The notes under the pieces: generated by a model
Seen by the model: only the letters and a program-made list of their open reading frames with translations
What the model was told of the DNA's origin: nothing
The model's database searches: none
Position numbers and translations under genes: made by a program
Assembly: GCF_016433145.1 (NCBI RefSeq)
Contig: NC_058135.1
Span: forward strand, 274,053,009 to 274,117,008
Reading direction: 5' to 3'
DNA: 64,000 nt
DNA from: Gracilinanus agilis
Taxonomy: Eukaryota
In this document: in pieces, positions 2,709 through 62,270 of the stretch
Numbering within the stretch: the stretch's first letter is position 1
How the letters are laid out: each line of letters starts with the position of its first letter

Positions 2709-3638
2709 TCATTTCTCATTTGAAGACATACTTTTTTCCCAGAGTTTCCTCATGGCATTTTTCACCTCTGCATTTCTCAGTGTATAGATCAGGGGATGTA
2801 ACATGGGGGCTACCAGAGTATAAAATACTGTCACAGCTTTATCTATGGGTAGAATTACCACAGGCCTCAAGTACACAAATATACAAGGCACAAAAAATAG
2901 GATAACAACAGTGATGTGAGACACACAAGTCGAGAGGGCTTTGCGTCTGCTTTCCCGACTGTGAGTTTTCAAAGAATTAAAGATGACAGCATAGGAAGCC
3001 ATCAATAGGAGAAAGTTTAAAAGACAGATGAGGCCACTATTTGCTGCAACAAAGAGGCCAAGATTATGGGTGTCCATGCAGACAAGTTTGAGTAAAGGGT
3101 TCAAATCACACATGAAGTGATCTATGACATTGGGCCCACAGAATGGCAACCAGACTGTGAAGAGAAGCTGTATTATTGCATGGAGAAAGCCTCCAGCCCA
3201 TGCTACCCCCACAAGGAGACCACAGAGCCTCTGGCTCATGATTGTAGTATAGTGCAGAGGCTTGCAGATGGCTACATAACGGTCATAGGCCATGACTGTT
3301 AGCAAGATGATCTCAGCACCACCAAAGAAATGTTCTGCAAAGAGTTGAGTCATACATCCATTAAAAGATATGATTTTCTTTTCATATAATGAGTCAACTA
3401 TCAGTTTGGGGGCCATGGAAGAAGAACAAAGACCATCTATTATGGACAGGAAAGACAGAAAGAAGTACATGGGAGAGTTCAGAGCTTGGCTGGTTGTGAC
3501 AGTAACAATAATAAGCAAGTTACCCACCAAAGTTACCAAGTAAATTAGTAAGAACACCACAAATATAATTTTCTGCATCTCTGGATTCTGTGTGAGGCCC
3601 AGGAGAATGAATTCAGTCACATTGTTTCCATTCTCCAT
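2709..3638 (-). CDS. olfactory receptor, family 4 subfamily C (intact 309 aa; NPxxY altered to HPLIY)
   Basis: Intact ORF with OR motifs [52 protein letters not shown]. Confidence 0.96.
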
Positions 3639-3889
3639 CTATATTGTTGAAATAAAATGGGAGAAAGGGGATGGGGAGCTGCTTTACCTGCAAAGAAGAT
3701 CACAGAATTGTAAGGGGTTGTCCAAAAATTCTGATCAGATGATCAACCTACCTCTTTTTGAAAATTTTGAAACTCCTCCAGTGATTCATTTGTTCAAAAA
3801 TTCAATTTGTATTTCTTTAAAATATTCTTTTTTTCACATCACCATGCTGGAACTAGACATTTGACAAGCTTTCATGTTTTATTGGTTAC

Positions 3890-4005: not shown

Positions 4006-5634
4006 CTGTAAGTAAAAATGACACTAATGATTCTGAGAATCAACCCATCCTTTCTGTTATCCATCTAAGATAACTTTTTTCTTTAAAATATTTGTAATCA
4101 ACAATCTTATTAAACAACATTTTCAGGGGGAGCTATGGACCTCTAACTATTCTAATTATAAATTATAAAATCACAATTTAGAAGTTCCTCTGTTCCAGAA
4201 ATGCCCAAATGAGAAACATATATACTTTACATATGAGAAAACTGAGGACAAAAGATTTTAAAGGTTTTATGATGGCATTGCATGTATCCAGTGAGTGGTA
4301 GAGCTCAGATTTAAATTCAAATCCTTTAACTCTAAAGCCAACCCTCTTCCAACTTCACCACAATTCATGTTCTTTCTATCATCCAATAGCACTGCCTTTT
4401 AAAATTCTGATGTTTAATGATCCTTTTTCAGTTTGTCTATCCTCCTTTTCTCCCCCCTGTAGTCCACCTCCTTTGGATCTTCATAGCTTCTCTTCTAAGT
4501 ACTGGGAACTTTTTCTCAGTACATTGTTCTATCTGTTGAATCCTTTAATCTTCTGATATTATTCAATTTTGAGCATTATTTTAAAGGGTTCTCTCCAAAT
4601 GTATATGTGTGTATCTATCTAGCTCTCTCTATATATAAATATTTTCATCTACATATCAATATCTACATATCTCTATCACTCTATCTATATATCTCTATTT
4701 TCATATTTACCCAATGTCCTAAGCTGATTTTTGTTATGTAAATTCTGAACTCACACTTTAAGGAAATAATCCTTGATGATAAGAGGAAACTTTATTCACA
4801 CAAGCTGCCCATGATGAATAATGCTATCTAATAGCTGACTCATCTCTAACCTACAGAGTGGCCCAGGATTTAGAGCCTATTCTGCCTAATTATAGGTATA
4901 TCAAAGCACATAGATAAAGCAGTGTTTCTATGAAATTCAGGAATGCATCAACAACCCAGTGAGAGAATAGCATTTTAAGATAAAGAGTTTAATGATAATA
5001 AGTTCTGTGGATAACAAAGAAATAGTCAACTAGTATAAATAGAAATACTGCTAAAAAACTTACCTTGATTCTATTTTAAAATGATGACACCCATCAATGG
5101 AGAATTTTCCATGATATTATTTTTGTGTAATAGGAACCTTCTGTTTTGAAAGATATAATGATGGACTTAGGAGAGAATGTCAGGATGACACAACTATCAA
5201 TCAGCCATTGTTTTCTTATGATCAAAGGACTTACTGTTGGAAGGAACAAAAGAAATTTTCTAGATATTTTTTATGATTGGACAAAATGAGGAACAGAGAT
5301 AATTATTTTCCTCATTTCATGCAGGTCAGACTCAGAATTTGAACATGTCTACTGATTATAAATCCAGTACTATTTCTATACTATGAAAGCTAGAACACTA
5401 AGTTCTTTCCCTCAGTAACTACAGCTGTAGAAAAACCTAGAGCAATAAGGAGAGATCATTAATCTTCTCCATTATTTGACTTTGTGATCTAAAGAAAAGT
5501 GATAGACTCTGGACTTGGACTTTCTCCAAGTGGCTCCCTTTTATCCATATATGTATCCTCTGATCCTGTTCTTAAATAGTCAATGAGAAGACAATTTCTC
5601 CCAAGTCAACAATGTGACTTAAAGAAAATCTCAA

Positions 5635-5790
5635 AGTTCAGGAACTATTTTTTATAACTATTGCTCTACCCTCAGAGGAATTAATTATCTCTCATATTTA
5701 GGAGATCTTATTTAGTCGATGTGTTTGGTAACACCTGCATTTTTGTATAATTGGCTACTTGTTTTGTATTTGGAATCCAATCCGTGCCCA
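5635..5790 (-). promoter_or_regulatory. candidate OR promoter block for gene 2709-3638 (homeodomain + O/E-like site + TATA-like)
   Basis: ctcagaggaattaattatc (5671-5689) is identical to 58385-58403, flanks align over ~150 bp, TATAAAA lies downstream on the minus strand; ~2 kb upstream of the ATG. Confidence 0.65.
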
Positions 5791-8640: not shown

Positions 8641-9551
8641 GATATTTTTGGTAGTAACAACTATAAATTATAAATTTTCTCCACATTAAAAATATTTAAC
8701 ACTTATTATTTTGAGAACAAAATACAAACAATTCTGTCTGACATTTTAAATCTTCCACATACTAGCCTACATTTAACATTGTTCATTGTAATATTTTTTC
8801 TTAAAACACTTTTCATGTTTGCTTTCACATAACAAGCATGTTTTTCTTAGTGTATGGCCTTCAGCCTCAAAACTCTGTCTTCAATTACATGCATTATGCC
8901 CAATATTTTGAATTCCACTTGATTCTTACCTCCTCTGACTTTTTAAATGCCAAGTTTCCATCATTTTCAGTTTTCTACATTACATTTGCTTTAATTCTCC
9001 TATCTAAATTTTCTAGGTTTCATTCATTCTTGAAATGTTTTTGTATTAATATTTATGAATCTTGTCCTTATTGATCAATGTACATGTTATAGGTCAGGAT
9101 TTTACCATTTTTTTTCCTTTACAACATCAGCCAGAGTACCTGATAGTGTGTGTGTATATGTATGTTTGTGTGTGTGTTCCATTAATATATGGAATTTTTG
9201 TTTTGTAGAGAAAGAGGGTTTTGGATTTTTCTCTTTATTAATATAGATGGTGTCATTTTGAACTAAACTTCAAGTATGGAACAAATAGGCAGTTACATAT
9301 ATCCTCAAAGGACTTAATTGCTGGTGGTGGTAATAACAAGGAATGAATAGGTTTGATGATATTACATAAGAAAAATCAATAATGGTTGGCAACCTTATTG
9401 GATTTTGATAAAGAGAAACAATGATATAGCAAATGTTTTAAGTCTGGGAAATGAGGAGAATGGTATCAGGGGAAGGCACAAGATGGTGAGAATGTTTAGA
9501 CATATTAAGTTTGAACTGATAGTGGGATACTAAAATAAAGGTGTCTAGCAG

Positions 9552-9619: not shown

Positions 9620-11721
9620 TTATTCCTGTTGACTCCTTAGGAGCATAGGGCCGCAACCATCTCATGCCAGCGGACTCTGTTCTGGGCAACTTCCCCCAGC
9701 TGAGCCCATGTCATTCCGACTGTTTTTGTTTCATTTTCGGCAGATCTTCGCCAGGTCTGTTTTGGTCTTCCGACTTTCCTCCTCCCTGGTGGATTCCAGC
9801 TCAGTGCTTGTCTGCCTACGTTGTCTTCCAGTTTTCGTAGCATATGTCCTATCCATCTCCACTTATATTTCTTTATGTCCTGACTAATGGGATACTGGAT
9901 TGTTCTTTCCCAAAGACCAGCATTGGAGATCTTTTCAGGCCATCTGATGTTCAAGATGTAGTGTAGACATCTGTTAACAAAGACCTGGAGTTTATTGGTG
10001 TTAGCGCTCCTCACTCTCCAGCTTTCTGATCCATATAGAAGGACGGCCTTTACATTGGTATTGAAGATTCGGAGCTTAGTGAGGAGGGACAGTGCTTTGG
10101 AGATCCAGACAGACCATAAGGTGTTAAATGCCTGTCTGGCTTTGTTGATTTGGTTTCTGATGTCCTCATCTGCTCTGCCATCCTTACTGACTATGCTACC
10201 CAAATAGGTGAAGTGGTCCGTCTCCTTGATGTTTTCTCCCTGTAGTTGGATTGGCAGGTCCTGTCTGCTGTTGACTGTGATCACCTGGTCTTCTTCTTGT
10301 TGATCTTCAGACCTGTCTTCTCTGCTTCTTCAGAGAGTCGTGCAAGTTTGGCTTGCGCATCCTGCTGCTTGTGAGAAAGGAGACAGATGTCATCTGCGAA
10401 GTCAAGGTCCTCAAGCTGTTTGGTATGAGTCCATTGAATGCCCGTATTGTTGTCCTTGGTAATTCTTCTCATGGTCCAATCTATGACCATCAAGAAGATA
10501 AGGGGCGAAAGCATGCAGCCTTGCTTCACTCTGGTCTTCACTGTGAAGGGAGCCGTCAGTTTCCCATTGTGGATGACCTGGCAGGTAAAGTCTTCGTATA
10601 ACCGCTGGATGATGTTGATGAGCTTCGGGGGAATCCCGTAATGCTGCATCAATCTCCAGATGATGTTCCTGTCCACGCTGTCAAATGCCTTCTCGAAATC
10701 CACGAAAGCCATGTAGAGGGGGGACTGCCATTCGATGGACTGTTCGATGATGATTCTTAGGGTGACGATATGGTCGGTGCACGATCTGTGCTGACGAAAC
10801 CCTGCTTTTTCTATTCTCAGTTTCCTGTCCAAGGCCTCCTTCAGTCTTTCTATGATTACTCTGGTCAGGATTTTGCTGGGAGCGGATAGAAGCATGATTC
10901 CTCGCCAGTTGCTGCATTGGGATAGGTCACCTTTCTTGGGTAGCTTCACTAGGTAGCCTAGTTTCCAGTCTGTCAGGACTTGTTCCTGTTCCCAGATCTT
11001 CTGTAGGAGGGGTTGTAGCATCTCCGCTGACATTTCTGGGTCTGCCTTGAGTGCCTCAGGGGGGATGCTGTCTGGACCTGCAGCCTTACCATTTTTCATG
11101 GTCTTGATGGCTTTGATGATCTCAACTTTGGTAGGTGGGCCCATGTTCACCTGAAGCAGTTCGGTGGCTGGTGGTATGTCCGGAACAGTTGGTGGAGGCG
11201 GTCAGTTCAGGATTTCTTCGAAATGTTCTGCCCATCGGGCTCTCTGCCCTGCATTGCTTGTTATTGTCTTGCCAGTCTTGTCCTTCACTGGCTTGCTAGG
11301 GTTGTAATTCTTTCCCAATAGAGTTCTTGTTATTTCGTATAGCCTCTTCATGTTCCCCTGCCCAGCTGCTATTTCTGCTTCTTCGGTCATATCGTGAATC
11401 AACCGTCTCTTGTCATATCTTGTGCTCTTCTTGACTTGATGGTTAATTTCCCAGTACTGTGTTCAAAGTTCTTCTTTCTCCTGTTGATCTTGGCATTAGC
11501 TGATCTTCTGTTTCAAATCTCTTCTCTGTTGTATCTTGCCCCATGTCTCTTGTGTTAACCATTCCTTGCGCTTTCTCTCTCTCTTTCTCAGGACTTCTGC
11601 GCAGGTGGTCTTCCAGGTCTGCTGGAGTTTGGTCCAGTGGTTTTCAACTGTTTCTCCCGTGAGTCCTGTCAAGGCCACGAACCTGTTCTTGATTTCGCAA
11701 TCGAATGCTTCTTTTTCCTCT
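9620..11721 (-). mobile_element. 5'-truncated RTE-clade LINE (SR3-like), relatively young
   Basis: RT motifs GFRQHRSCTD, YMAFVDFEKAFDS, VKQGCMLSP, LDFADD; RTE C-terminal LLYGSESW and KWRWIGH; very short 3'UTR; possible degenerate TSD ctagcag (9545-9551)/ctggtag (11722-11728); visibly GC/CpG-richer than flanks. Confidence 0.93.
9637..11720 (-). pseudogene. disrupted RTE reverse transcriptase ORF
   Basis: ORF pieces 11496..11678, 11202..11402 and 10281..11150 share one frame, broken by TAA 11496-11498, TGA 11463-11465 and TGA 11202-11204; a ~1-nt frameshift near 10287 leads into 9637..10284. Confidence 0.9.
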
Positions 11722-14843: not shown

Positions 14844-15773
14844 TTATTTGTTACTCCAGGCAAATCTTTGACTCCATAACTTCCTCATGGCACTTTTTAC
14901 CTCTGCATTTCTCAGAGTGTAGATCAATGGGTTTAACATGGGGGTTATCATGGTGTAAAATACAGCCATAGCTTTGTCAATGGGAAAGGTAGTCATGGGA
15001 CGAAGATAGACAAAAATACAGGGAATGAAGAATAAGACAACCACAGTAATGTGGGACAGACATGTAGAGAGGGCTTTTTGCCTCCCTTCTGAACCATGTG
15101 TTTTCAGGGAGTAAAAGATGACAATGTAGGAGGAAATTAGCATGGTGAATATTAGCACACACATTACCCCACTGTTTGCAGCAATAAAGAGAGCAAAGGG
15201 GTGAGTATCAATACAGGCGAGTTTCAGCAATGGGAAAAAATCACAAATAAAATGGTCCATAACATTGGGACCACAGAAGGGCAACCAAAATACCGACACG
15301 ATCTGTATTGTGGCATGAAGAAAGCCCCCCAGCCATGCCAGCCCCACCAGTATACCACACAAATGTTGGTTCATGATGGTCATATAGTGCAGAGGTTTGC
15401 AGATGGCCACATAGCGGTCATAGGCCATCACCGTGAGCAGGATGATCTCAGCGCCACCAAAGAAATGTTCTGCAAAGAGCTGAGTCATGCACCCATTGAA
15501 AGAGATGGATTTTCTCACCGAGAGTGAGTCAATTATCATTTTGGGGGCCATAGTGGATGAACAGCAGCCATCTATGAAGGACAAATAGGACAGGAAATAG
15601 TACATGGGTGAGCCTAGAGCCTTGCTTGTGGTGATAGTGATGATAATTAGCAAGTTGCCTGCCAGTGTTGCCAAGTAGATGAGCAAAAACACCACAAATA
15701 TAATTTTCTGCATCTTTAGATTCTCTGTGAGTCCCAGGAGAATGAATTCAGTCACATTATTAATTCCCTCCAT
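14844..15773 (-). CDS. olfactory receptor, family 4 subfamily C (intact 309 aa)
   Basis: Intact ORF with [36 protein letters not shown]. Confidence 0.96.
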
Positions 15774-16349
15774 CTATACACAGGAGTAAAAAAATACATA
15801 TGTTCAAGTATATTTACATGAAATGACAATAGCAATGATTGGTAGTGCTTTTAAATTTAATAAACTACGTATTTCATATCTTCCCAGGGGGAACATCATT
15901 TTAAATATTGAGAAATAAAAGAGATAAGTGAAAAGATAAAAGACTCATTCCTGCTTCTCATTAGTGGCTTTCTGAACAAAAATGATACTGAGTCTAATCC
16001 ATACATCTGCCTCCATAATCCTTATCTTCAGCCCTTGCTCCTAGACATCTCATTCATTTTCTTGAGTCATGGACAGAAACTATATCTATAAGTTCCTCCA
16101 GTAAACAACATTTTAGTAACACCTGGCAGAAACATCTAGCAAGAACATGAGCATAAGGCATGTATTTTCCTGTTCTTGTCAAAGATAGGTATACATTAAA
16201 TTTTGAGGGTATGTACTCTGCCACTTACATAAATTATTCCAATCCTATTATAAAGCACACATCCACACTCTACATGAATCAATCAACATATATTGTAATT
16301 AGGTCATAGAATTAGAAATGTGTAAAATGAACTCAGAGCCTGTCTAAAG

Positions 16350-23409: not shown

Positions 23410-23640
23410 CTTCATTCAAAGAACTGACCTCTTAGCATCTCTGAGGATTTCTAATTGGTCCTGGTAGAAGGATCTGCCAAAGTAGCAGTAAAATTGATTT
23501 AACTTCTACAAACTTCTTTTTTTTCAGACAGGTGGATGGGATGAGCAGATGAAGGTATCCAATGAGGAATTGTGTTGGGCTGTGGGCCACCCTAATCAAG
23601 ATTAGTGGCTGAACTCTGGCTAAGATTAGGTGGCAATCAG
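23410..23640 (-). promoter_or_regulatory. candidate OR promoter block for gene 14844-15773
   Basis: Aligns with 33541-33790: ctgaggatttcTAATTGgtcctggtagaagg, gattagtggct (23600-23610) and ctaagattaggtggca (23620-23635). Confidence 0.65.
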
Positions 23641-23870
23641 TGTTGAGAATTAATGCATAAAGAATTTTTTTAAAAATAGAAAATATTACCTGAACTTGTG
23701 CAAAGAAAAGTAAAGTCAGGAAAACAGTGTATATAATGACCACAAAATTTTCAAGAAAGCATCACTTAATTTCAATTCAATTAAGATTAATTATAGTAGT
23801 CATTTTGGCTGCAAAAAAGCTGATGATAATTTTCATATATATGTATGTATGTATGTATACATGCATCTGT

Positions 23871-26929: not shown

Positions 26930-27560
26930 ATTATCTCTCTGAAGGCAGATAACATTTTTCATTGTCTCTGGAATTGTCTTAGATCACTCTATGGCTGAGA
27001 ATAACTAGGTCCTTCATATTTTCTCATAAAAATAATTCTGTTACTGTGCACAATGTTCTGGTTTTGCTCACTTCACTTTGTATCACTTCATGTAAATCTT
27101 TTCAGGTATTTCCAGAATCATCCTGTTTATCATTTCTTATAGCACAATAGAATTCAATTACAATCATATACTACAACTTTTTGAGCCATTCTCCAATTGA
27201 TGGACAACTCTTTCATATCAAATTCTTTGCCATCAGAAAAAGAGCTGCATAAAATATTTTATACAAATAGGTCACTTCCCTTTATTTATTTAGAACTAGT
27301 AGTGACCTTGGTGGGTCAAAGGATATACAAATTTTAGAACCTTTCGGGCATAGTTCCAAATTGCTTTCCAAAATGGTTGGATTAGTTCACAACTTCACTA
27401 ACAGCTCATTAGACTCCCAATTTTCCTACATCCTTTCCAAAATTTATCATTTTTTTCTCTTTTCTCAGACTATTCTGATAGGTGTGAATTAATGCTTCAA
27501 GGTTGTTTTAATTTGCTTTTCTCCAATCAAGACTGTAAATCAAGAGTTCTTACTTTTTTT
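26930..27560 (-). mobile_element. L1 ORF2 3' fragment
   Basis: ctggttttgctcacttcactttgtatc...gccattctccaattgatggac...ccaaattgctttccaaaatggttgg. Confidence 0.8.
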
Positions 27561-29846: not shown

Positions 29847-30776
29847 TTATTTCTTACATGAGGCAATTCTTTGACTCCATAAATTCCTCATGGCAGCCTT
29901 TACTTCTTTATTCCTCAAAGTGTAGATTAAGGGGTTTAACATGGGGGTTATCATTGAATAAAAAACTGTGATAGCCTTATCAATGGGGAAGATAGTCATT
30001 GGCCGGAGATATACAAATATACAAGGAATAAAGAATAACAGGACTACTGTGATATGGGAGACACAGGTGGAGAGGGCTTTGAGCCTCCCCTCCTGACTAT
30101 GAGATTTCAGGGAAGTCAATATGACTACATAGGAAGCTATCAAGAGGAGAAAGTTTAAAAGGCAGATGAACCCACTATTGGCTGCAACAAACAGACCCAG
30201 GGTATGAGTATCCATGCAAGCAAGATTGAGCAGAGGGAATAAGTCACACATGAAGTGATCTATAACATTAGGGCCACAGAAGGGGAGCCAGATTGTGATG
30301 ATAAGCTGTATTGTTGCATGTAGAAAGCCCCCAGCCCAAGCTACCCCCACTAGAAGGCTACAGAGCTTCTGGCTCATAATCATTGTATAGTGCAAAGGCT
30401 TGCAAATTGCCACATAGCGGTCATAAGCCATGACTGTGAGCAGGATGATCTCAGTGCCACCAAAAAAGTGTTCTGCAAAGAGTTGGGTCATGCACCCATT
30501 GAAGGAGATTGTTTTCTTCTCAAAGAGTGAGTCAATTATCATTTTGGGGGCCAAGGAAGATGAACAACAGCCATCTAGGAAAGACAAGTAGGACAGAAAG
30601 TAGTACATGGGGGAATCCAGAGCCTGACTATAGGCAATAGTGATGATAATGAGCAGGTTGCCTCCCAGTGTTGCCAAGTAGATGAGCAAAAACACCACAA
30701 ATATGATTTTCTGCATCTCTGGATTCTGTGTGAGGCCCAGGAGAATGAATTCAGTCACATTGTTTACACTCCTCAT
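29847..30776 (-). CDS. olfactory receptor, family 4 subfamily C (intact 309 aa)
   Basis: Intact ORF with [36 protein letters not shown]. Confidence 0.96.
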
Positions 30777-31499
30777 CTATATACATATATGTGAGAAATA
30801 AACTGGTTAGAGTTAATTCACTTTAAAAGAATAATTATAATTAGACACATAGAATTTCATATGCAAATATCTTTTTAAATATTCTCAGGTAAATCCAGTT
30901 TTGTAGATAGTAAAAGAAACAGAAAGGAAGGTGAAGTTGCTTTCATTCTTTCAATGAATGAGTCACTACACCCTGGTTCAAAGAGATCTAATCTAAGAGT
31001 ATCTATGATCCTTGTCATCAGCTCTTGTTCTTATACTGGTTTTTCCTTTTTCTGGCTGAGCTCTTGTGAATAAGATTTTTTTTCCAGAAACATTCAGCAG
31101 ACATATGACCTTGGGACACTTATGTTTCTCTTTTCAGAGGCAATAATGTACTAAATTTACAAGTCAGAGTACATTAGAACTATATAAAATAAAAGCTCTC
31201 ACTTATGACGTTATTCTGTCATTCTCTCTCTCTCTTTCTGTCTCTCTCTCCTCTCTTATCTCTCTGTCTCCATCTCTTTTCTATCTGCCTCTCTTTCACA
31301 CACATATACACACAGATACATACAATATCCTGTAACCAGAGATATGGCAAGATATCAAAAGCATACAATCTCAGTGTTGTAAGAATTTCAGAATATGTTT
31401 ATTTTAATCATTCTCCTCACTTTCATCCACCTTCCAAAGTTACTTATCTATGACATATATGATAATTGTATTCTCTGTGTCTGTATGAGACAGAATTAC

Positions 31500-33540: not shown

Positions 33541-33790
33541 TTCATTCAGTGTTGAGACTTGATGACGTATTGATCTTTTATCTCTTTTGAGGATTAATAA
33601 TTAGTCCTGTTAGGAAGGTGTGCCAAATACTGGTTCAAATATTTTAACCAATTAAAATCAGTTATTTTGTAATGAAATAGGTTGAATTTTAGGGTCATGG
33701 AGTTTTGTTAAGTCTGGTCTATAGAAACCCATTGAATTAGATAGGATTAGTGGCTAAACCTTGCTTGCCTAAGATTAGGTGGCATACAAT
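33541..33790 (-). promoter_or_regulatory. candidate OR promoter block for gene 29847-30776
   Basis: tttgaggattaaTAATTAgtcctgttaggaagg, gattagtggct (33745-33755) and ctaagattaggtggca (33769-33784) align with 23410-23640. Confidence 0.65.
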
Positions 33791-34559
33791 GAGTAAAATT
33801 AGGATACAATGTAATCAGAGAAAAATGAAAAATGTGTACAAACATGTGCAGAGCAAAACAGGTGCTCATTTCAACAATATAAATGACAACAAAATTTCAA
33901 ATAACAGTGTACTAATAATGACATCTGTGAATAGCATTATTGACAATTAACAAATCAGGAAACATCTGTTTCCTCCTAGAGTGGTAGGAGATCATGGTTC
34001 TTGAAAATCATATCTTCTTACTCCTTCTTCCTGTTTATCATAAGGAATAGTTCACTAAAAGAGAATATTATTTGGAGTGACTGCTAAAAAAAACAAACTC
34101 CTGATAAAGGTTTTTGAAGTCATTAACTAATCAATCAACAAGTACTTATGAAGTGCCTACAATATGCCAAGAACTTTCCACCATTGTTTCAGTGAATTTA
34201 AATAAAACAATAAACTTGCCTCTTCTCAAGAAGTTTATTTCCTAGCTTTTTAGATGATATATACACATAGAGGTATGGAACACTTATGAAACTATCAAAA
34301 ATAATATTTTTAGGAAATATACATGTATCTAGGGCAGTCAAGGAGGCTTTATGTAGGACAAAATATTTAAGGTGATTATTGAAGAATATTAAAAATTGGA
34401 AGGAGTACAATTCAAGGATAATCAAGCTATACAAAAAGGTACAAAATTAGGACATATGGCTCCATGTGTAGGGAAACATAGAAGGATAATCAAAATGACT
34501 TGAAGCCTATAGAAGAAGAATTATTATATAATAAAGTTTGGAAATCAGAAATAACAGGT

Positions 34560-35635
34560 AGTTAGTATTGTTTTAATTTTAATTTTGTTTTTTATCAAAT
34601 TTCCCCAACTATATATATGTAGACACAATTTTAATAATAATTTTCTGATATTATAAGATCCATGTTCTTTCCTTTCCTACATCTTCTTTATATGTACTAT
34701 CATGCAATAAATATTTCCATGCTCTTCTTGTTGTTAAAGAATACACATATCATGTATATAAGAATTAAAACTTATGAAGGAAATAAGTGAAAATGGTAGG
34801 CTCAATTTTATTCCATCATAATCATATACCACAACTTGTTCAGTATTCCACAAATTGATGGACATCACTTCCATTTTCAAAATTCTTTGCCACCACAAAA
34901 ATAGCTGCTATAAATATTTTTATACAACTAGATCAATTCCCCCTATTTAAAATATCTTTGGGATATAGGCCAATTATGGTGATAATTCTGAGTCAAGGGT
35001 TAAGTACAGTTTCATGGTCCTTTGGTCATGATTCCAAATTGCTCTCCAGAATGGATATATGAGTTCATAACTCATATATTAGTGTTCTGATTTTGCCAAT
35101 ATTTATCTTGTACTGCTCAATATTTATCATTTTCTTTTCCTTTTTTGACATATTAGCCAGTCTGATAAGTATGAAGTAGTATCTCAAAGTTATTTTAATT
35201 TGCATTTCTTCAATTAATAGTTATTTTGATTATCTTTTCATGTGACTAAAATAGGTTTAATTTATCAATCCTAGAAATTCCTGTTCATATCCTTTGAGAA
35301 TTTACAAATTGGGAAATGATTATGTTCATATAAATTTGACTCATTTGACTAAATATGTGAGAAATGAAGTCTTTGTTAAGACACTTGTTAAAACATTCCC
35401 AGATTTTGTTCCATTCTAATCTTGATTACATTTGTTTTGTTTGAAGCAGAAACTTTTAAATTTAGTACAGTCAGTTATCTATTTTATATCTGGTAATATT
35501 CTCTGTTTCTTGTTTGGTCATAAGTTCTTTTCTCTTCCATAGATCTAACAAGCAAATGATTTCATGCTCCCCTAATTTGTTTATGGTATCACTCTTTATT
35601 TTTAAGTCATGAATCCATTTTTACTTTATCTTGAT
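34560..35635 (-). mobile_element. L1 3' fragment
   Basis: attctttgccaccacaaaaatagctgctataaatatt...ccaaattgctctccagaatgg...aaattcctgttcatatcctttga. Confidence 0.8.
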
Positions 35636-40229: not shown

Positions 40230-42530
40230 AAGTTCATACCTCAGGGAAAATCTGAATAATCATGAAAATTTCATTAATGTTTCTCATAGGTAACATTACA
40301 TCAGAATAACTCATACATATGTAGTTGTACCTCAGAAATTTTTATTTGATTTCTCCAATTAATAGTTTTTATATGAATAAAATAATTGTATTTTCTTCAT
40401 CTGAGAAGTGCCTATACATATTTTATGACCTTTTATCACTTGGAATTGCCTTGTATTCTTATAAATTTGAATCCGTTTTCCATATACTTGAGAAATATGA
40501 CCCTCAGAGATATTTGTCATAAAATTTCCCCCAAATTTCTGTTTCCCTTTTTTTGAGGTGGAAATTGAGGGGACCTTGAAAATTCCAAAGTTCACTCTCT
40601 TTAACTACCATTAAACAATATGACCAGGGAAATCCATAATTTAAAATATAATGCTTTATTGAGAGAGAGAAATGTAGGGGAACTATCTCAAGTCATTGAC
40701 TTAAGACGACTGCCGCCAAAAATTTAGAGAGAGAGAAAGAGAGAGAGAGAGACAGAGAAAGAGAGAGAGAGAGAAATAGCCATGTTTTCCTCAGACTTAC
40801 CAAAGTCCAGCCTCACTTACTGACTTATAGACAAAATCTTCCTAAAAAAAGTTCCTCTAGGTTTACAGAGACACTCCCAACTTACTGGAAGATATAATAG
40901 AGTTAACATTTCAAGAGGTTGTACACATTCAAGCAAATTAACATATTCAAGAAATTGGAGAATAACTTTACAGTAGGATGTGATGATCAGTCAAGCCACT
41001 GAACTTGACTTCCTGGAAGAAACTTCAATAGCTACAATACAATACAAAGCATTGGTACTTCAGGGTATAAGAACAGTCCAGTCTGGGACTCTTGCCTCAG
41101 ACAAATTCCCAAACTCACTTAAAGCTTTAAAGTCTTCGTAAGGATGGGAATGGGGACCAGCTTTTACTAAATTTGGCAATATTGATAATTATTAATAACG
41201 AGAATTAAACACTAATTTCTCATTCCACACATATTCTTTTACTAAAACTTTTTAAATGTACTGTATTCAAAGTTACCTATTTTGTATCTTATGGTATTTG
41301 CTATGTTTTATTTGGTCTTAAATCCTTCCCTTTTGACAGGTTTGATAGGTATACTATTTTATGATCCCCTAATTTGTTCATTTTATTCCCCTTTATTTCT
41401 AAAGGATCCATCCACATTGACTTTATCTTTATATATATATATGTGTATATATATATATATATATAGTGTGAATTGTTGGTCTGTGCCTAATTTCTACTAT
41501 TTTGTTTTCTAGTTTTCCCCAGCAGTTTTTGTGAAATAATGGATTTTTCTTTCAGAAGTTTGTATCTTTGAGTTGTAGTGTATTTTTACATTAAATTTTT
41601 ATGTAATTAACTATTGTGTGTTAAGTATCTAATATATTCCATTGATCCACTCTTTCTCAGAGAATACTTGATTGTTCTGATGCACTTTATAATGCAGTCT
41701 GAGATCAGGCACAAAACTAGGCCAACTTCCTACATTTTTTCCCTTAATTCCCCTGATATTTTTACCCCTTGGCCCTTCCAGATAAATTTTGTTATTATTA
41801 TTTCATCACTCCAAGAAATAATTTATGAGTAGTTTGATTACTATGTCACTGAATAGGTAAGTTAATTTAGGTGAAATTGTTATTTTATTATATTGGTTTG
41901 ACCTACACATGAACAATTAATGTTTTCCCCCCAATTATTTACATTTGATTTTATTTCTATGAATTCATTTATAGTTGTGTTCACATAGTTCCTGAGTTCA
42001 TCTTGGCAGGAAAATTCCAAGTATTTTGTATTATATAAATTTTGAATTATATCGATCTATCTCTTGCTGTTGGACTTATTTGTTAGTATGAAGAAATGCT
42101 GATGATAAATCAGTGGGTTTATTTTATATTCTGCAACTCTGCTAAAATTGTCAATTGGTTCAATTAGTTCTTTGGTTGATCTTTAGCATTCTTTAAGTCT
42201 ACCATCATGCAATTTGCAAAGAGTGTTAGCTTTATTTCCTCATAATTGTATTCTAATTACTTCAATTTCTTCTTTTCCTCTTATTGCTATAGCTATTATT
42301 TCTAGAATAATATTTAACAGTAGTAGTGAAAATGGCTATCCTTGTTTCATTCCTGATGTTATTGAGAAGGCTTCTAGCTTGTCCCCATTGCAGATAATGC
42401 TTGTTGATGGTTTTAGTTAGGTGTTATTTATCATTTTATGAAAAGTTCTATTCATTCAAATGTTCTCTAATGTTTTAATGGGATTGTCAAAAGTTTTTCT
42501 TGCATCCTCTGAGATAACCATATGGTTTCT
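40230..42530 (-). mobile_element. L1 ORF2 fragment interrupted by an LTR
   Basis: gcagtctgagatcaggcac...tctaccatcatgcaatttgcaaagag...ccttgtttcattcctgat..., antisense L1 ORF2 signature. Confidence 0.75.
40559..41227 (-). mobile_element. solo LTR nested in L1
   Basis: TGGAA...TTCCA inverted termini, gctttattg (minus-strand AATAAA), internal (GA)n; TSD not resolved. Confidence 0.55.
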
Positions 42531-42849: not shown

Positions 42850-43060
42850 TTAGTCTTTATGGAAACTTTCATTCCATGGCCTTGAAGGCAAAGGTTGTAA
42901 ACCCCAAAGGCAGGGAAAAGAACCAACTAGACAGACATATTGTTACACAAACAAATCACCTAAATCCCACTTCGGTTTCCAAGGCAAAGCCCTTCAAAAA
43001 CCATTGGTAATTAAGTCTTCTGAGAATGAAGTCTGAGGCATGGGAATAGGTCAGTAACCT
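42850..43060 (+). promoter_or_regulatory. candidate OR promoter block for gene 47264-48193
   Basis: ggTAATTAagtcttctgagaatgaagtctgaggcatgggaataggtcagtaacc aligns with the reverse complement of 58350-58403; similarity extends ~150 bp upstream; same strand as the gene. Confidence 0.65.
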
Positions 43061-43669
43061 TTGTTAGGATCCTATTTAAATATTTTGGAAACAAAGAAGA
43101 AATCATTATGGCAGTTTTTCTGTGTGGGTTGTTTAAGTGGTGGAATGGTCTGAAACACTATTTGGACTCATTTCTGCTCTAGGTTTTATATGCTTTTCTG
43201 TGTTCACAGGAGAATATCACTGTGACTCCTGGAATTCACTGTTTTCCTGATGCCAGATTGAATCCATGACTTTCTGAGAACAGAATTTTTGTTCCTCTGC
43301 TGTTGGGGGAAGTTTAACACCTGTATTATTTTGATCGAAACTATTGCTTTTCTTATTATTCTGAACTGTTGACTCAAAGTGGGTTAAACCTATTATCTTA
43401 GAAGATACTTATTGTGGAAGGCTTCATTGCAAACATCAATAATTGAATATACTTTTATTAACTAGAGTTATTTAGTGACTTATCTGCACTCTTGAATATA
43501 CTGCAAACTATCTTCATCCAAATTAACAACAAATGTAAGTTTTTCACCTTATCATATTTTAAATTTAGTTCATAATACACTGTTACTTGTCCATTATATT
43601 TTATGAGATATAATTTTGTTAGTTGCCTAACCTTTTTTTTTGTAAAAGATTTTACCATATTACATGAGA

Positions 43670-45060: not shown

Positions 45061-47263
45061 AAGAATAATGGACTTTTCTTTTTGAACATGACTTCATGGT
45101 CTCTTTTCCTGTTTTTAACATGAACCAGAGCACAAAAGACTAAGAGAAAGAGGTGATTCCTCCATGCATGCCACCCTGGTCAGGTCATAATTAAATTTTC
45201 CTTTTCTCATTTTCAGAGTTGAGAAAGCATAATGAAAATATGGAGGTTGTATAGAGGAAGGTATTCAAAATAGAAAAAAGGACTAGAGACAATTTCTTGT
45301 GAAAGTGGATTACATTGCATTTTAATCTTTAAAAGTACCTAATATAAACAAGGTGATGTACTAAGATGTAAAACAGAAAAGTCTAAAATGAAACTATTTC
45401 TACTCTAAAACTCACATTTTATTGGATTAATATAACTTATTATATTATATATTTTATAATGCACATATCACACAAGAATATTTGAGGAAGAAAAATAACA
45501 AATGAAGGTTTGAAGGTGAGCATCACAACAGAGTCAATGTTTGAGTTTAGTCTTGAAGAAAGACAAGGCTTCTTAATGGAAATGAAGATGGAGGGCACTG
45601 CTATCAAAACTAATAGTTTTAGTTCATGGAAGTAGGCATTTTCTAGAAAGTGTTAATAGTTTAATTGGACAGGAACAAAGAGTTCATAAAATGAAGCACT
45701 GAAATTGTCAGTAAAGGTAGTTATTTGCCAAACTGCCGAGATCATTTATCTAAGTAAAGGAGGGAAGAAAGAGGCAAGGTAAATGAAGAACGAAGGAAAG
45801 ACAAAGAAGAAAAGAAAACACAGGAGAAGAAAACCAGCTACAGTATCAAGACTGCTTGGGAGGAGTAGGAGGAAAATGCCTTTACAGAACACATCATTCT
45901 TGAAATTTCAGTCCTAGGTTTTCTAACATGCTAAATATGTCTTCAGAAATGGACAAACAGGCTATAAAAATAAAATGTTTTGGAAAGGATATAAGTACTA
46001 TTGTATGAATGAGGGATAAATGAAGCTCATTCTAACTGGGCTTAGATTATGTAATTAGAATCAATGAGTGTAAATTATGTGCAGGTACATTTTCTTTCAC
46101 AATGAGAAGGTAATAGTGAAAAATTCTGACAAATTACAAAAATAATGTGATATTTTAGGGCCTGCTATTTTGCCAATTTGAGAGTGGATGATTCCTTGAG
46201 CTAGAAGACTTCAGATGTCTGTCAACAAGTTCAAGATGTTTAGGTGAGAAAAATGATGCAGTATTTATGTTAACATTTCATTGTTCTATGTGTCCAGAAG
46301 TGGGAGCAAAGATAATAAATATTAATATGTTGCCTATTATATGTCAGATACTTTACCAGGTACATTTTATCCAATATTTCTTTTGATCTCACAAAAATCC
46401 TTCAGGGTAGGTAATATTATCTTCCTCATTTTTAAGATGAGGGAACTAAATCAAACTGAATTAAAAAATTAAGTCAAACAGCAAGTTTAAATGTTTGAAT
46501 CTGTATTTGCCTCAGGTCTTCCTTACTCCATGTCTAGTATTATATCTATTGCACTACCAACTGCTGTGTACAGTCAGATAAAAATTTCAATTAAAATCAG
46601 GAAAAATTATGGATTTGCATAGGTTAGAACTTCTTTCCCTTAAAGACCAGTGACTGCAGCGCATGTCAGCAATCCATGTTACATTCCAAAAGTATTCTAC
46701 TGTTAAGCTTAGGGAACACATTGTCTTATGAAATACTATAGCAGAAACATGCAATTTTTATACACTTCTAAAAGATCATCTGGTACCAATTTGGATTGTT
46801 AGACCACATTCTTCAACCCCCCAGGTGAAATCAGTAGAGATATCATTATCATCCCTATAGTCTTTTACATGACAGAAGGGGGAAAAGATCTATAAGTAAT
46901 TTCTTTTTTGAAAATTTGCTAACCCATAGATCAAATTCCATTCACTCAGAAAAAAAATTGGACAATATTTCTCTTCATTTAAAATGGCCTTCACTTTGAA
47001 AATGAAAGCGATTTCCCTGTAGGGCTCCCTGTTTTAGAATAGGATGACTATTATCTTTAGGAAGAAAGACTGGAATAGGTATTTAGAAGGTGTAAAGTCA
47101 CAATCACTTGAAAAAGTTTTTAAAAAAAGGATAGTAAATGATCATTTATTCTCAATGACATGCTTATACTTGTATATTTGATTATTTAATCACTGTATAT
47201 TTATTCAATTTTCTTTGTAGATAATGTGCATCTCTTGATACGTTTTTCCTTCACGTTACATAG

Positions 47264-48193
47264 ATGGAGAAAGGGAGGAATGTGACAGAATTCATCCTAT
47301 TGGGACTTACACAGAATATGAAGATGCAGAAAATAATATTTGCATTGTTTCTGGTCTTATACATGATAACATTGGCAGGCAATGTTCTCATTATTGTGAC
47401 CATCACCAACAGTCAAGCTCTAAGCTCCCCCATGTATTTTTTCTTGGCTCACTTGTCTTTCATAGATACAATCTATTCCTCTTCCTCAGCACCTAAACTG
47501 ATCATGGACTCTCTACAAGAAAAGAAAACAATCTCCTTTAATTGGTGTATGACCCAAGTCTATGCAGAGCACATCTTTGGTGCTACTGAGATCATCTTAC
47601 TTACAGTGATGGCCTATGATAGATATGTTGCCATCTGTAAACCACTCCACTATACCACAATTATGAATAGTAAGTTGTGTGGCATCCTTGTGGGGGTAGC
47701 TTGGACAGGGGGCTTTCTCCATGCAACAATCCAGATTCTTTTTACAATCTGGTTGCCTTTCTGTGGACCCAACATCATAGATCACTTCATGTGTGATTTG
47801 TACCCTTTGCTTAATCTTGTCTGCATGGACACCCACACCCTTGGTCTATTTGTGGCAGCTAACAGTGGCTTCATCTGTCTGTTCAACTTCCTCTTATTGA
47901 TGATCTCCTATGTTGTCATTCTACGCTCCCTGAAGAATCATAGTCTAGAGGGGAGACGCAAAGCCCTCTCCACCTGTGTCTCTCATATCACTGTGGTAAT
48001 CTTGTTTTTTTTGCCTTGCATATTTGTGTACCTGAGGCCTGTGACTACCCTTCCTGTAGATAAAGCTGTGGCTGTCTTTTATACTATGGTAGCCCCTATG
48101 TTAAACCCTTTAATCTACACACTAAGGAACACAGAGGTGAAAAATGCCATGAGGAAACTCTGGAAAAGGAAAGTTAATTTAGGTGATAAGTAA
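47264..48193 (+). CDS. OR4C12: olfactory receptor OR4C12-like (intact 309 aa)
   Basis: Intact ORF; [25 protein letters not shown] and [13 protein letters not shown] match the recalled human OR4C12 closely; orthology not tested. Confidence 0.9.
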
Positions 48194-54912: not shown

Positions 54913-55839
54913 TTAGCTAGCAATAGTATCATTCCAGCTACATAACTTCCTGATGGCATTTTTCATTTGGGTATTTCTCAGTGTGTAAATTAAAGGGTTT
55001 AACATGGGGGTAATAATTGTGTAGAAGACTGCAACAGCTTTATCAATGGGAAAGGTTGTTGCAGGCCTCATATAGACAAAAATACAAGGAACAAAAAATA
55101 GAACAACTACAGTGATGTGGGAACCACAGGTGGAAAGGGCCTTGCGTCTCCCCTCCACACTGTGAGTCTTCAGAGAGGACAGAATGACAACATAGGAGAC
55201 CATCAACAGGAGGAAGTTTAAGAAGCAAATGAAACCACTGTTGGCTGCAACAAATAAACCAAGGGTATGAGTGTCAGTGCAGGCAAGAGTGAGCAAAGGA
55301 TTTAAGTCACACATAAAATGATCTATGACATTGGGACCACAAAAGGGTAATTGGCTCAGGAAGAGCATCTGTATAGTTGCATGGAGTAAACCTCCTATCC
55401 AGACCACACCAACCAAGATGCCACGTACCCGCCAATTCATGATGGTCATGTAGTGCAGAGGCTTGCAAATTGCCACATAGCGGTCATAGGCCATTACAGT
55501 GAGTAGGATGCCCTCAGCACCTCCAAAGAAATGTTCACCAAACACTTGTGTCATACAACCATTGAAGAAAATGGTTTTCTTTTCATAAAGTGAGTCTATA
55601 ATGAGTTTAGGTGTATTAACAGAGGAATAACAGGCATCTATAAAGGACAAGTAGGCAAGGAAAAAGTACATAGGGGAACCCAGGGTTGGACTAATGTTGA
55701 TGGTGATGACAATAAGTATGTTACCTACCATTGTAATGGCATAGATTATAAAAAACACAACAAAAACAATTTTTTGCATCTTTGGATTCTCTGTTAGCCC
55801 CAGTAGAATGAATTCAGTTACATTTTTTCCATTATCCAT
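54913..55839 (-). CDS. OR4C46: olfactory receptor OR4C46/OR4C13-like (intact 308 aa)
   Basis: Intact ORF; [29 protein letters not shown] and [11 protein letters not shown] match the recalled human OR4C46/OR4C13; exact orthologue uncertain. Confidence 0.88.
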
Positions 55840-55880: not shown

Positions 55881-55905
55881 CTGCAAAGAAAGAAAGTTTT
55901 CAGTA
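55881..55905 (-). other. 3' splice acceptor of the 5'UTR intron of the OR at 54913-55839
   Basis: Minus strand cttactgaaaactttctttctttgcAG, 41 nt before the ATG. Confidence 0.55.
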
Positions 55906-56470: not shown

Positions 56471-57970
56471 CATTGTCTTACTCTGGCCATGCCATTTAAC
56501 TTTTCTTTACCCTAATTTCCTTGTCTGAAAATGGTGGGAAGTATTGGTCTTCACCCTCTATGGTATCTTCTATCATGAAGTCTATGACTTCATGATATGA
56601 TTATATATACTCCCTCCTTAGGCACCTTAAAGAGCTATTTTTTCAATGTTTACATCAATTTAATAATATAGACATTTCAATAATTATTCAAATCATTCAA
56701 TCAGATTTCTCCTTCTATTTATATAGTCATGATATATTGCTATTTCCTACTTGATAATATACTTAGATATGTTGAGGTGCATTGACTTTTGAAATACAAA
56801 GAACAAACAAAAATTCTTTATCTTTATCTTACAATGGAGTATCCCTAAAGAACCCTGAATAGGTTGAGATTTTTATCATTTACTTTGATTTTCAAAATCT
56901 ATTAGCAAATGACACAACAAGGAGGGATAGATAATACTGATAATACTATAGTAACAATCAGTGTTCAATGAGTTCTTGACATGCTAAATATAAAGACAAC
57001 TTTTAGAAAGATATAAGGAAAGAAAAATAAATTCTAAAGTTCCATGGCTTTAACAATGTTTTCACCATGACAAACTGATAAGGTTTAGTTAGTTAAGACA
57101 TTTATTTCTTCTCACTGATTTATATTAAAAAATGATTTTTAAAAATTTTTTTAATTTACTTTCCCTATGGCACAAAAGTATGAATGGTAGGATGTTAATT
57201 TGGTTCACTGACTTCTTAGATCTGATGTCAGGGTAGGGAAAGTCCTCACAGTTAAAACAATTAGATTCTAAGGGATGAAAATCTACAGTTTACACAGCTA
57301 TTTTATTGTCCTCTATTTTATCCAACATTTTATATTTTATTATGACTTTTGTGCTATCTATAGGTATATGTTATAAATATTTTAAATTTTTTAATTATTA
57401 CAACTTTAAAATTACTCTTTAAAGGCACTGTGGTCTAATGTAAGAGTTAGAAGACCCCTCTTGGAAGCGCTAAATCTGTCTCTGTTACCTTTGGTAACTG
57501 ATGCCTTTCTCGTTCCTTCATTTCCTTTCCCTATTAAATCTTATTTCTATTACCATATAAATGGTATTACCATATATATTAATTATATATATTAAACTAT
57601 ATTATATATAATATTATATCAATATATGTTTAATACCCCCAATACAATACATATATTTACTAAAACCTTTTCTTAACTACCTCCCCATCTTGAGACTCTT
57701 TCAAATGCTATTATTTTCATTTCATGGAGGAGTCAAATGTGGCTTTGGAAAATTAAATTAGGTAAAAAATGAAATATCCTGACAGTGATAGTAGAGTATT
57801 TTCTTATTACATCATTATTTTCCATGCTTGCTTCTAGGCTTGTTTTAAGAATCTAGTGTTATACTGCAGATTAAATCCCATTAAAACCATGAACTAAATT
57901 GTAAGGAATTATGAAATGTATAAATCAGACTAAGTATTAGCCCCACTGGAGTTTGGTGGGTGGGGTCAGA

Positions 57971-57979: not shown

Positions 57980-58349
57980 AGTCCTATTTACAGATACAGA
58001 CAAATAATTTTTCATGTATTCAAGAGAATTCTCATTTTCATGATGATGTTTTTATTGCGTAGGAAGATGTTGGCAGACTGGTTCAAATACTGACTTGGTG
58101 CTTTATGGAAGGTTTTTCAGCATCATTTCTTCCAGGATCTCCGTTGTCCTGTATCTAAGAAAACTGAACCTTATTTAGTAATATATTCTCTAACAAACAA
58201 AGCACATAGATACTAAGGAAGACACCTTGATTCTATGCCTGCCTTCATGAAATAAAAGGAATAAATGACTCTAAATGACCATCTATTTTTATACCTCAAT
58301 TCCCTTTACCTAACCTTTGAGAAATATGTCTAAATAGGATCTTGTATAG

Positions 58350-58560
58350 GTTCAGGGACCTATTTTCATACCCAGAGCTGTGTTCTCAGAGGAATTAATT
58401 ATCAACAGTGTTAGAAATATTTTGATGCAGAAGACCTATTATTTGGGGAATGTGTTTTTGAAACAATGTACACATAACTGGTTCCTTCATCTCTGTATAC
58501 TGGAGTCTTCATTTGTCTGCCCTGCAAGTAAGATAATGGAATATGCCAAGTAGGACAAAG
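58350..58560 (-). promoter_or_regulatory. candidate OR promoter block for gene 54913-55839
   Basis: gTTCTCagAGGAAT (O/E-like) overlapping TAATTA at 58396-58401; aligns with 5635-5790 and, in reverse complement, with 42850-43060. Confidence 0.65.
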
Positions 58561-59260: not shown

Positions 59261-59796
59261 ATACAGCCAGGGGAAAATTATAGCCAAGGAAATATATTGC
59301 TCAAAAAATAAGTGTTCAAAAAGTATAAAAAGGCATCATTAAGATGAAATCCAAATCTGAACTATCAATAATAATATGAAAAATGGTCAAAATAACTTAC
59401 AACTAGATAAATTCAAATTAAAATAAGTCTGATGTTCTACCTTATAGCAATAATATTGACAAAGATAAAAAAAAGGATAAATGACAAATGCTGGAATAGC
59501 TATGTAAAATTAGCATATTAATACATTGTTGTTGGAATTATCAATTGATCCAGTTATTCAGGCAAGCAATTTCAAACCATGACATACAAGTTATTGAACT
59601 GTGTATATTATCTGATTCAATAATACTAATAATAGATCTATACTCAAAAAGAGAGGAAAGGACCCATATGTATTTACAGATATATACATACACACACAAT
59701 GTATATTCTATATATTATCTATACACAAAATGTGTATACTATCTATGCATGTGTTTCTATATACATAATATATATACTGTCTGTATATACACACAC

Positions 59797-61419: not shown

Positions 61420-62270
61420 AAGAAAGCAGGAAGCTAGGGATTTTTTTCTATTTTTGTAGCAGGTGTCTTTGATAAATGACTAAATTATTAAGTATATGGA
61501 GAGCTCAGTGTTATTTATATAAAAACGTCTTTCTACCATTGATATGTGGTCAAAGTATATGAACGAGCTGTTTTTAATAAAGAAATCAAAGTCATATATA
61601 GTTATATAAAATTCTTTAAATCACTTTTGATTATAGAAATGCAAGTTAAAACAACTCTGAGATACCAACTCATACCTATCAGATTGGCTAATATGAGAAA
61701 AAAAAAAGAAAATGATGAATTTTGGAGGGGATACATGAAAATTGAGTCACTGATATATTGTTGGTGAAAATGAGATCTGATCTAACCATTCTGGAGAGCA
61801 ATTTGCAGCCCTGTTCAAAGAAATCTAAAACTGTCTAAACCCTTTGATCCATCAATATCTTGCTTGGTCTGTATCCCAAAAAGACAAAAAAGGCAAAAGG
61901 ATCTATTTGTATAAAACATTTATTCCATTTATTTTTGTGATATAAAAGAATTGTAATTTGTGAGGTTGTCCATCATTTAGGGAATGGTTGAATACATTCT
62001 GGTATAAAAATAACAAGCAGGATGGTTTCAGAAAAATCTGGAAAGACTTAAATGAACTGATACAAAGTGAAGTGATCAGAACCAGAAGAACATTGAACTC
62101 TATGATAACAATATTTGTTGATATATAATTGTAGAAGACCTAGTTATTTTCAGCAATGCAGTCATCCAAGGCAATACCAGACTCATGATGAAAAAATGCC
62201 ATCTGTATTACCCTCTGAGAAAGAAATGGTGAAATCTGAATGAACCCTGAGGCATATAATGTTTCATTTT
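61420..62270 (+). mobile_element. L1 ORF2 3' end/3'UTR fragment
   Basis: gaaatgcaagttaaaacaactctgagataccaactcatacctatcagattggc (EMQVKTTLRYQLIPIRLA), the L1 ORF2 C-terminal motif. Confidence 0.85.

Follow-up and report, generated by a model that had tools for sequence, protein, structure and literature searches.

Gene-linked upstream blocks with neighbouring homeodomain and O/E-like sites as candidate promoters of OR4C olfactory receptor genes in Gracilinanus agilis

The OR4C genes of the window

The window, a stretch of 64 kb of Gracilinanus agilis DNA analysed here in its whole length, contains five intact, single-exon olfactory receptor (OR) genes, which are referred to as g1 to g5 in the order of their position. 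The genes g1 (2709-3638, 309 aa), g2 (14844-15773, ATG at 15773), g3 (29847-30776, ATG at 30776) and g5 (54913-55839, 308 aa) lie on the minus strand, and g4 (47264-48193, 309 aa) lies on the plus strand. The Pfam family 7tm_4 was matched by all five (E 1e-41 to 1e-48). The gene g5 is the OR4C46 orthologue. Its protein shares 92-94% identity with OR4C46-like receptors of Australian marsupials, 89-90% with those of opossums, 82-86% with placental OR4C46 and 84% with a platypus receptor. We noticed that this unusually conserved receptor is yet just 73-74% identical to its neighbours g1-g4. In an ML tree, g5 was nested among OR4C46 of platypus, placentals and marsupials (support of this clade 100/99). 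The other four genes formed a separate clade, also with a support of 100/99 and with the topology (g4,(g1,(g2,g3))).

Candidate splice acceptors are found at or near the start codons. The ATG of g1-g4 is preceded by a pyrimidine-rich tract with (T/C)ATAG at its end, flush with the start codon (3639-3640, 15774-15775 and 30777-30778 on the minus strand; 47262-47263 on the plus strand), and from its sequence this is likely a splice acceptor. The candidate acceptor reads TATAG in g1 (3639-3640, minus) and CATAG in g4 (47262-47263, plus), in both cases abutting the ATG. For g5 the candidate is ...ctttgcag, 41 nt before the ATG (AG at 55881-55882, minus). An acceptor-like site of the form ttt(g/c)(c/t)ag, located ~41-45 nt upstream of the ATG, is common to g1, g4 and g5. 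Candidate acceptors in these positions imply an upstream non-coding exon.

The region between g1 and g2 harbours two long ORFs (215 and 289 aa; 9637-11150, minus strand), which are reverse-transcriptase-like and correspond to an RTE LINE.

Homologous blocks upstream of g1, g4 and g5

A block of DNA, here called type A, recurs upstream of g1, g4 and g5. Its homology was analysed by leave-one-out searches with nhmmer, in which a profile built from two copies was searched on both strands of the 64 kb. The profile of g4 and g5 recovered the block of g1 at 5621-5732 (minus, E 1.2e-4), that of g1 and g5 the block of g4 at 42919-43085 (plus, E 4.8e-10), and that of g1 and g4 the block of g5 at 58322-58494 (minus, E 2.1e-15). 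With all three profiles the third copy was the sole non-training match at E <= 0.1 in the 64 kb; the profile of g1 and g4 also gave a chance-level match at 9299-9328 (E 0.7).

Comparison of the gene-oriented upstream DNA by blastn revealed 68% identity over 150 bp between g4 and g5 (42939-43086 vs 58467-58323, E 7e-12) and 76% over 54 bp between g1 and g5 (5689-5636 vs 58403-58350, E 7.5e-6). Pairwise blastn of the upstream regions of g1 and g4 found nothing. Against 300 first-order Markov nulls, the matches g4-g5 and g1-g5 reached z-scores of 12.1 and 6.3, respectively, and 0 of 300 nulls reached either of them; the pair g1-g4 was not significant against these nulls. In g1 the solid part comprises ~110 bp (5621-5732) and not the whole of 5635-5790 as given in the earlier note.

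All three blocks are located upstream of the coding exon in the orientation of their gene and at an intron-like distance. From TAATTA to the ATG we measured 2049 bp for g1, 4256 bp for g4 and 2562 bp for g5, in agreement with the claimed distances of 2.0, 4.2 and 2.5 kb and with the claimed orientation. Between the block and the coding exon of these genes, blastn yielded simple repeats only and the remainder was unalignable, as had been reported for the intervening DNA. Positions 57123-57163, within the presumed intron of g5, were masked as N in later scans and comparisons of the window. The type A blocks are homologous, gene-linked and gene-oriented.

A further collinear match between the upstream regions of g4 and g5 (40260-40529, plus; 61448-61729, minus) was considered as a second regulatory block and rejected, with additional copies at 35120-35399 (plus), 27436-27536 (plus) and 59308-59459 (minus). 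This dispersed repeat family is AT-rich and ~280 bp long, and its copies near g4 and g5 are collinear with the type A blocks.

At the centre of interest within the type A block is a short core. In g1 it reads GATAATTAATTCCTCTGAGGG (5669-5689, minus) and consists of a LIM-homeodomain site, TAATTAAT, followed after 2 bp by an O/E-like site, TCCTCTGAGG. The 19-mer ctcagaggaattaattatc is indeed identical at 5671-5689 and at 58385-58403, the latter being the core of g5 (GATAATTAATTCCTCTGAG, minus). The core of g4, GGTAATTAAGTCTTCTGAG (43006-43024, plus), is the reverse-complement copy that had been noticed near this gene; it is identical to the g1/g5 core at 16 of 19 positions and thus carries 3 differences from the 19-mer. 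Read in gene orientation, the cores are TAATTA-AT-TCCTCTGAGA in g1 and g5 and TAATTA-AG-TCTTCTGAGA in g4, and the core with its 2-bp spacing can be written as TAATTAATTCCTCTGAG. A TAATTA overlapping an O/E-like motif had been proposed; both sites are present, and they are spaced 2 bp apart in type A.

The two sites were compared with the homeodomain and O/E consensus strings of Young 2011 (PMC3247239). The homeodomain site (TAATTAAT in g1 and g5, TAATTAAG in g4) fits the V$LHXF core ttAATTaat. The O/E-like site, TCCTCTGAGAA, has one mismatch to the V$NOLF consensus TCCCyngrgar and two to TCCCNNGGGA, both counted on consensus strings and not as a matrix score.

The TATA-like element claimed for the g1 copy was also found: TATAAAAAA occupies 5648-5656 on the minus strand (5656-5648 in gene orientation), 31 nt downstream of the start of TAATTA. 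The positions aligned to it are weaker or degenerate, TATGAAAAT in g5 and CATGGGAAT in g4, so that a canonical TATA box is present in g1 only. As the TATA box of g1, TATAAAAAA would place the transcription start site (TSS) near 5625.

Conservation of the core and its occurrence at all five genes

At fourfold-degenerate sites, g1, g4 and g5 are 41-50% identical to one another, corresponding to Jukes-Cantor distances of 0.8-1.2 changes per site. These sites are near saturation, and neutral DNA of the three genes should therefore be unalignable. The type A blocks are 68-76% identical, compared to the 41-50% at the fourfold sites of the same genes. Conservation among the three copies is unevenly distributed: invariant columns amount to 16 of 20 on the core TGATAATTAATTCCTCTGAG, to 6-9 of 20 over the 60-70 bp on its flanks and to 3-4 of 20 outside the block. 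Such uneven conservation with its peak at the core is characteristic of purifying selection acting on a putative binding-site core. Judged from its sequence, the type A block is a real, constrained and gene-linked candidate cis-regulatory block. Since g5 belongs to the mammal-wide OR4C46 clade and g1-g4 form a separate one, the block is common to both sides of an old gene split. It is probably older than the living mammals, assuming that the root of the tree lies outside the OR4C46 clade.

The genes g2 and g3 have a different block in common, here called type B (23425-23750 vs 33571-33897, minus; 61% identity over 341 bp, E 2e-13). In g2 its core consists of CAATTA, 4 nt and TCCTCAGAG (23439-23457, minus), 7.7 kb upstream of the ATG at 15773. 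The core of g3 is degenerate, with TAATTA, 4 nt and TCCTCAAAA (33585-33603, minus), 2.8 kb upstream of the ATG at 30776, and aligns with that of g2. Besides this shared core, the type B block also holds two conserved GCCAC(C)TAATCT repeats.

Both strands of the 64 kb were then scanned with a pattern based solely on the type A cores (YAATTA, up to 6 nt, TC[CT]TC[AT]GAG). It matched four times, at the three type A cores and at the type B core of g2. The mean number of matches in the nulls was 0.04, and 0 of 200 nulls reached four. When the last three letters of the pattern were relaxed, a change made post hoc after the g3 site had been seen, only the g3 site was added. Each gene thereby has exactly one core site and all five sites are gene-oriented, at 2.0 (g1), 7.7 (g2), 2.8 (g3), 4.3 (g4) and 2.6 kb (g5) upstream. 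Outside the core, no homology of type A to type B could be detected, also at the profile level. The claim that all five genes have such a block stands at the level of the motif, type B having the same arrangement of a homeodomain site and TCCTC(A/T)GAG, but to speak of one homologous block is an overstatement, as the flanks of the two types are not detectably homologous. In the simplest history, both sites were retained in the ancestor of g2 and g3, and the sequence flanking them either diverged or was replaced.

Candidate promoters and alternative explanations

We consider it reasonably likely, with a probability of roughly 65%, that three class II OR genes of the OR4C subfamily have their conserved proximal promoters in the type A blocks, each separated from the single coding exon by an intron of 2-4 kb. 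Under this reading, Lhx2 (or Emx2) would bind the homeodomain site and an Ebf/Olf factor the adjacent O/E-like site in the neuron that chooses the gene. Transcription would start ~50-200 bp downstream of the core, with a putative TATA box 31 nt downstream in g1 and weaker A/T-rich elements in g4 and g5, and splicing would join a short non-coding exon to the acceptor next to the ATG. As the cluster grew by tandem duplication, the module would have been copied along with each gene, and it would be older than the divergence between OR4C46 and the remaining OR4C genes. In the lineage of g2 and g3, the flanks would have been replaced or have diverged beyond recognition (type B), with the pair of homeodomain and O/E-like sites retained.

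The arrangement resembles what has been described in mouse. Mouse OR promoters are AT-rich, with a conserved O/E site less than 200 bp from the TSS in 78%, and homeodomain sites and TATA boxes are overrepresented in them (PMC3247239). The activity of the M71 promoter needs both the homeodomain and the O/E sites, and a promoter fragment of ~300 bp can drive expression resembling that of an OR (reviewed in PMC12547500). The AT-rich promoters of mouse class II ORs (M71/Olfr151, MOR23; Young 2011, Clowney 2011, Plessy 2012) are located upstream of a non-coding first exon. The blocks are like them in having conserved O/E-like and homeodomain (Lhx2/Emx2) sites kilobases away from the coding exon, and sometimes a TATA element. 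They differ from them in the 2-bp gap between the sites, in the O/E variant TCCT...GAGA and in that the module is common to paralogues that probably split before crown mammals; moreover, the position of the TSS is only a predicted one here. The proposal of the earlier note that these are unannotated promoters is partly supported: homologous, constrained and gene-linked blocks carry a LIM-homeodomain site beside an O/E-like site, as known OR promoters do, which is consistent with a promoter function.

Several further features of the blocks were examined. Mean GC content was 0.38-0.41 at -180 to 0 and at +150 to +300, compared to 0.34 for the window, a weak rise in the direction of the bump expected at OR TSSs. 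Splice donors were scored with a consensus matrix, and a conserved strong donor after the block was not found: the best candidates were located 425 nt downstream in g5 and 624 nt downstream in g1, and in g4 no donor scored above 3.1. The type A blocks gave no match in Rfam. Among the mouse OR promoters bound by Lhx2/Ebf, which are listed by coordinates, none could be tied to the OR4C family.

The strongest alternative, which we nevertheless regard as unlikely, is that the blocks act as gene-proximal enhancers similar to the Greek Islands, with the true TSS elsewhere between block and coding exon. Here, Lhx2 and Ebf would cooperate in binding the neighbouring sites and would hold the element open within heterochromatin. 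The distance of just 2 bp between the homeodomain and O/E-like sites of type A fits such a function: side-by-side composites of these sites are reported to be enriched in mouse enhancers and not in promoters (PMC5608512, PMC12547500), and in the Greek Island composite the two motifs are 1 bp apart (PMC11643329). As in this composite (Monahan 2017, PMC5608512), the O/E site is degenerate and has the homeodomain site immediately on its 5' side and on the same strand; order and orientation are the same in the Sfaktiria probe, TAATTG-A-TCTCCAAGGA, and in TAATTA-AT-TCCTCTGAGA. That a conserved donor and a conserved TATA element are both absent among the blocks of g1, g4 and g5 also speaks for an enhancer. 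The spacing is, however, wider than the 1 bp of Sfaktiria, namely 2 bp in type A (+1) and 4 bp in type B (+3), and a 2-bp insertion impaired EMSA competition for a synthetic Lhx2-Ebf fusion, a result obtained with the fusion protein and not with the native proteins. As illustrated by the P element, promoter and enhancer sequence may look alike (PMC12547500), so that the motif alone is indecisive. Greek Islands are intergenic elements, few per cluster and acting on many ORs, with ~63 of them for more than 1000 mouse ORs (PMC5608512). In the window, there is one element per gene for five genes, each gene-oriented and at an intron-like distance, which fits a promoter better than a cluster-level enhancer.

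It is very improbable that the blocks derive from an ancient interspersed repeat of which pieces happened to land, or were exapted, upstream of three ORs. Repeats do produce such matches in this DNA, since the nearby collinear match between g4 and g5 (40260-40529 vs 61448-61729) turned out to be a dispersed repeat. This real repeat was recognised with five copies in mixed orientation by the same method, which therefore detects real repeats here and did not class the type A block as one. Within the 64-kb window, the type A block has three copies only, all of them OR-linked and gene-oriented; they are 68-76% alike, without closer copies in the window. Furthermore, their conservation peaks at the transcription-factor core rather than being even, and the same core recurs in the otherwise unrelated type B blocks. 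Least probable of all is that the blocks represent a functionless neutral relic of the duplication unit or the product of gene conversion between the upstream regions: tandem duplicates share upstream DNA by descent and gene conversion is known among clustered ORs, but with synonymous sites near saturation and the rest of the introns unalignable a neutral relic should have vanished, and a conversion confined to ~150 bp, kilobases from the coding exons and centred on the homeodomain and O/E core in three genes, is unlikely and, given the 68-76% identity, would itself be old.

The more interesting property of the blocks is the tight juxtaposition of homeodomain and O/E-like sites, kept in five paralogues across a split that probably predates the living mammals. 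If they are promoters, they would offer a natural test of whether motif spacing truly separates OR enhancers from promoters, as is held in mouse. A far-reaching version, which we consider unlikely, is that the promoters of OR4C genes, the deeply conserved OR4C46 among them, themselves contain an Lhx2/Ebf site pair juxtaposed as in Greek Islands, and that this pair has been preserved since before monotremes and therians separated. In that case OR4C promoters could bind both factors cooperatively without a distant enhancer and would form a 'self-sufficient' family of OR promoters, and the division between promoters and enhancers drawn from mouse data would be blurred. Most likely, the blocks are otherwise an ordinary, well-kept example of the known type of OR promoter. 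As OR TSSs are poorly annotated outside mouse and human, they also provide a concrete place to seek the first exons of marsupial OR4C genes.

Finally, a weak match to the core, CAATTAAGTCCTTTGAG, with 3 mismatches was observed at 9304-9320 (minus), 5.7 kb upstream of g1 and in the orientation of this gene. By chance alone ~0.7 matches of this kind would be expected, and its profile E-values are 0.1-0.7; it is located 300 bp from the RTE LINE. This match may have arisen by chance or may be a decayed extra promoter.
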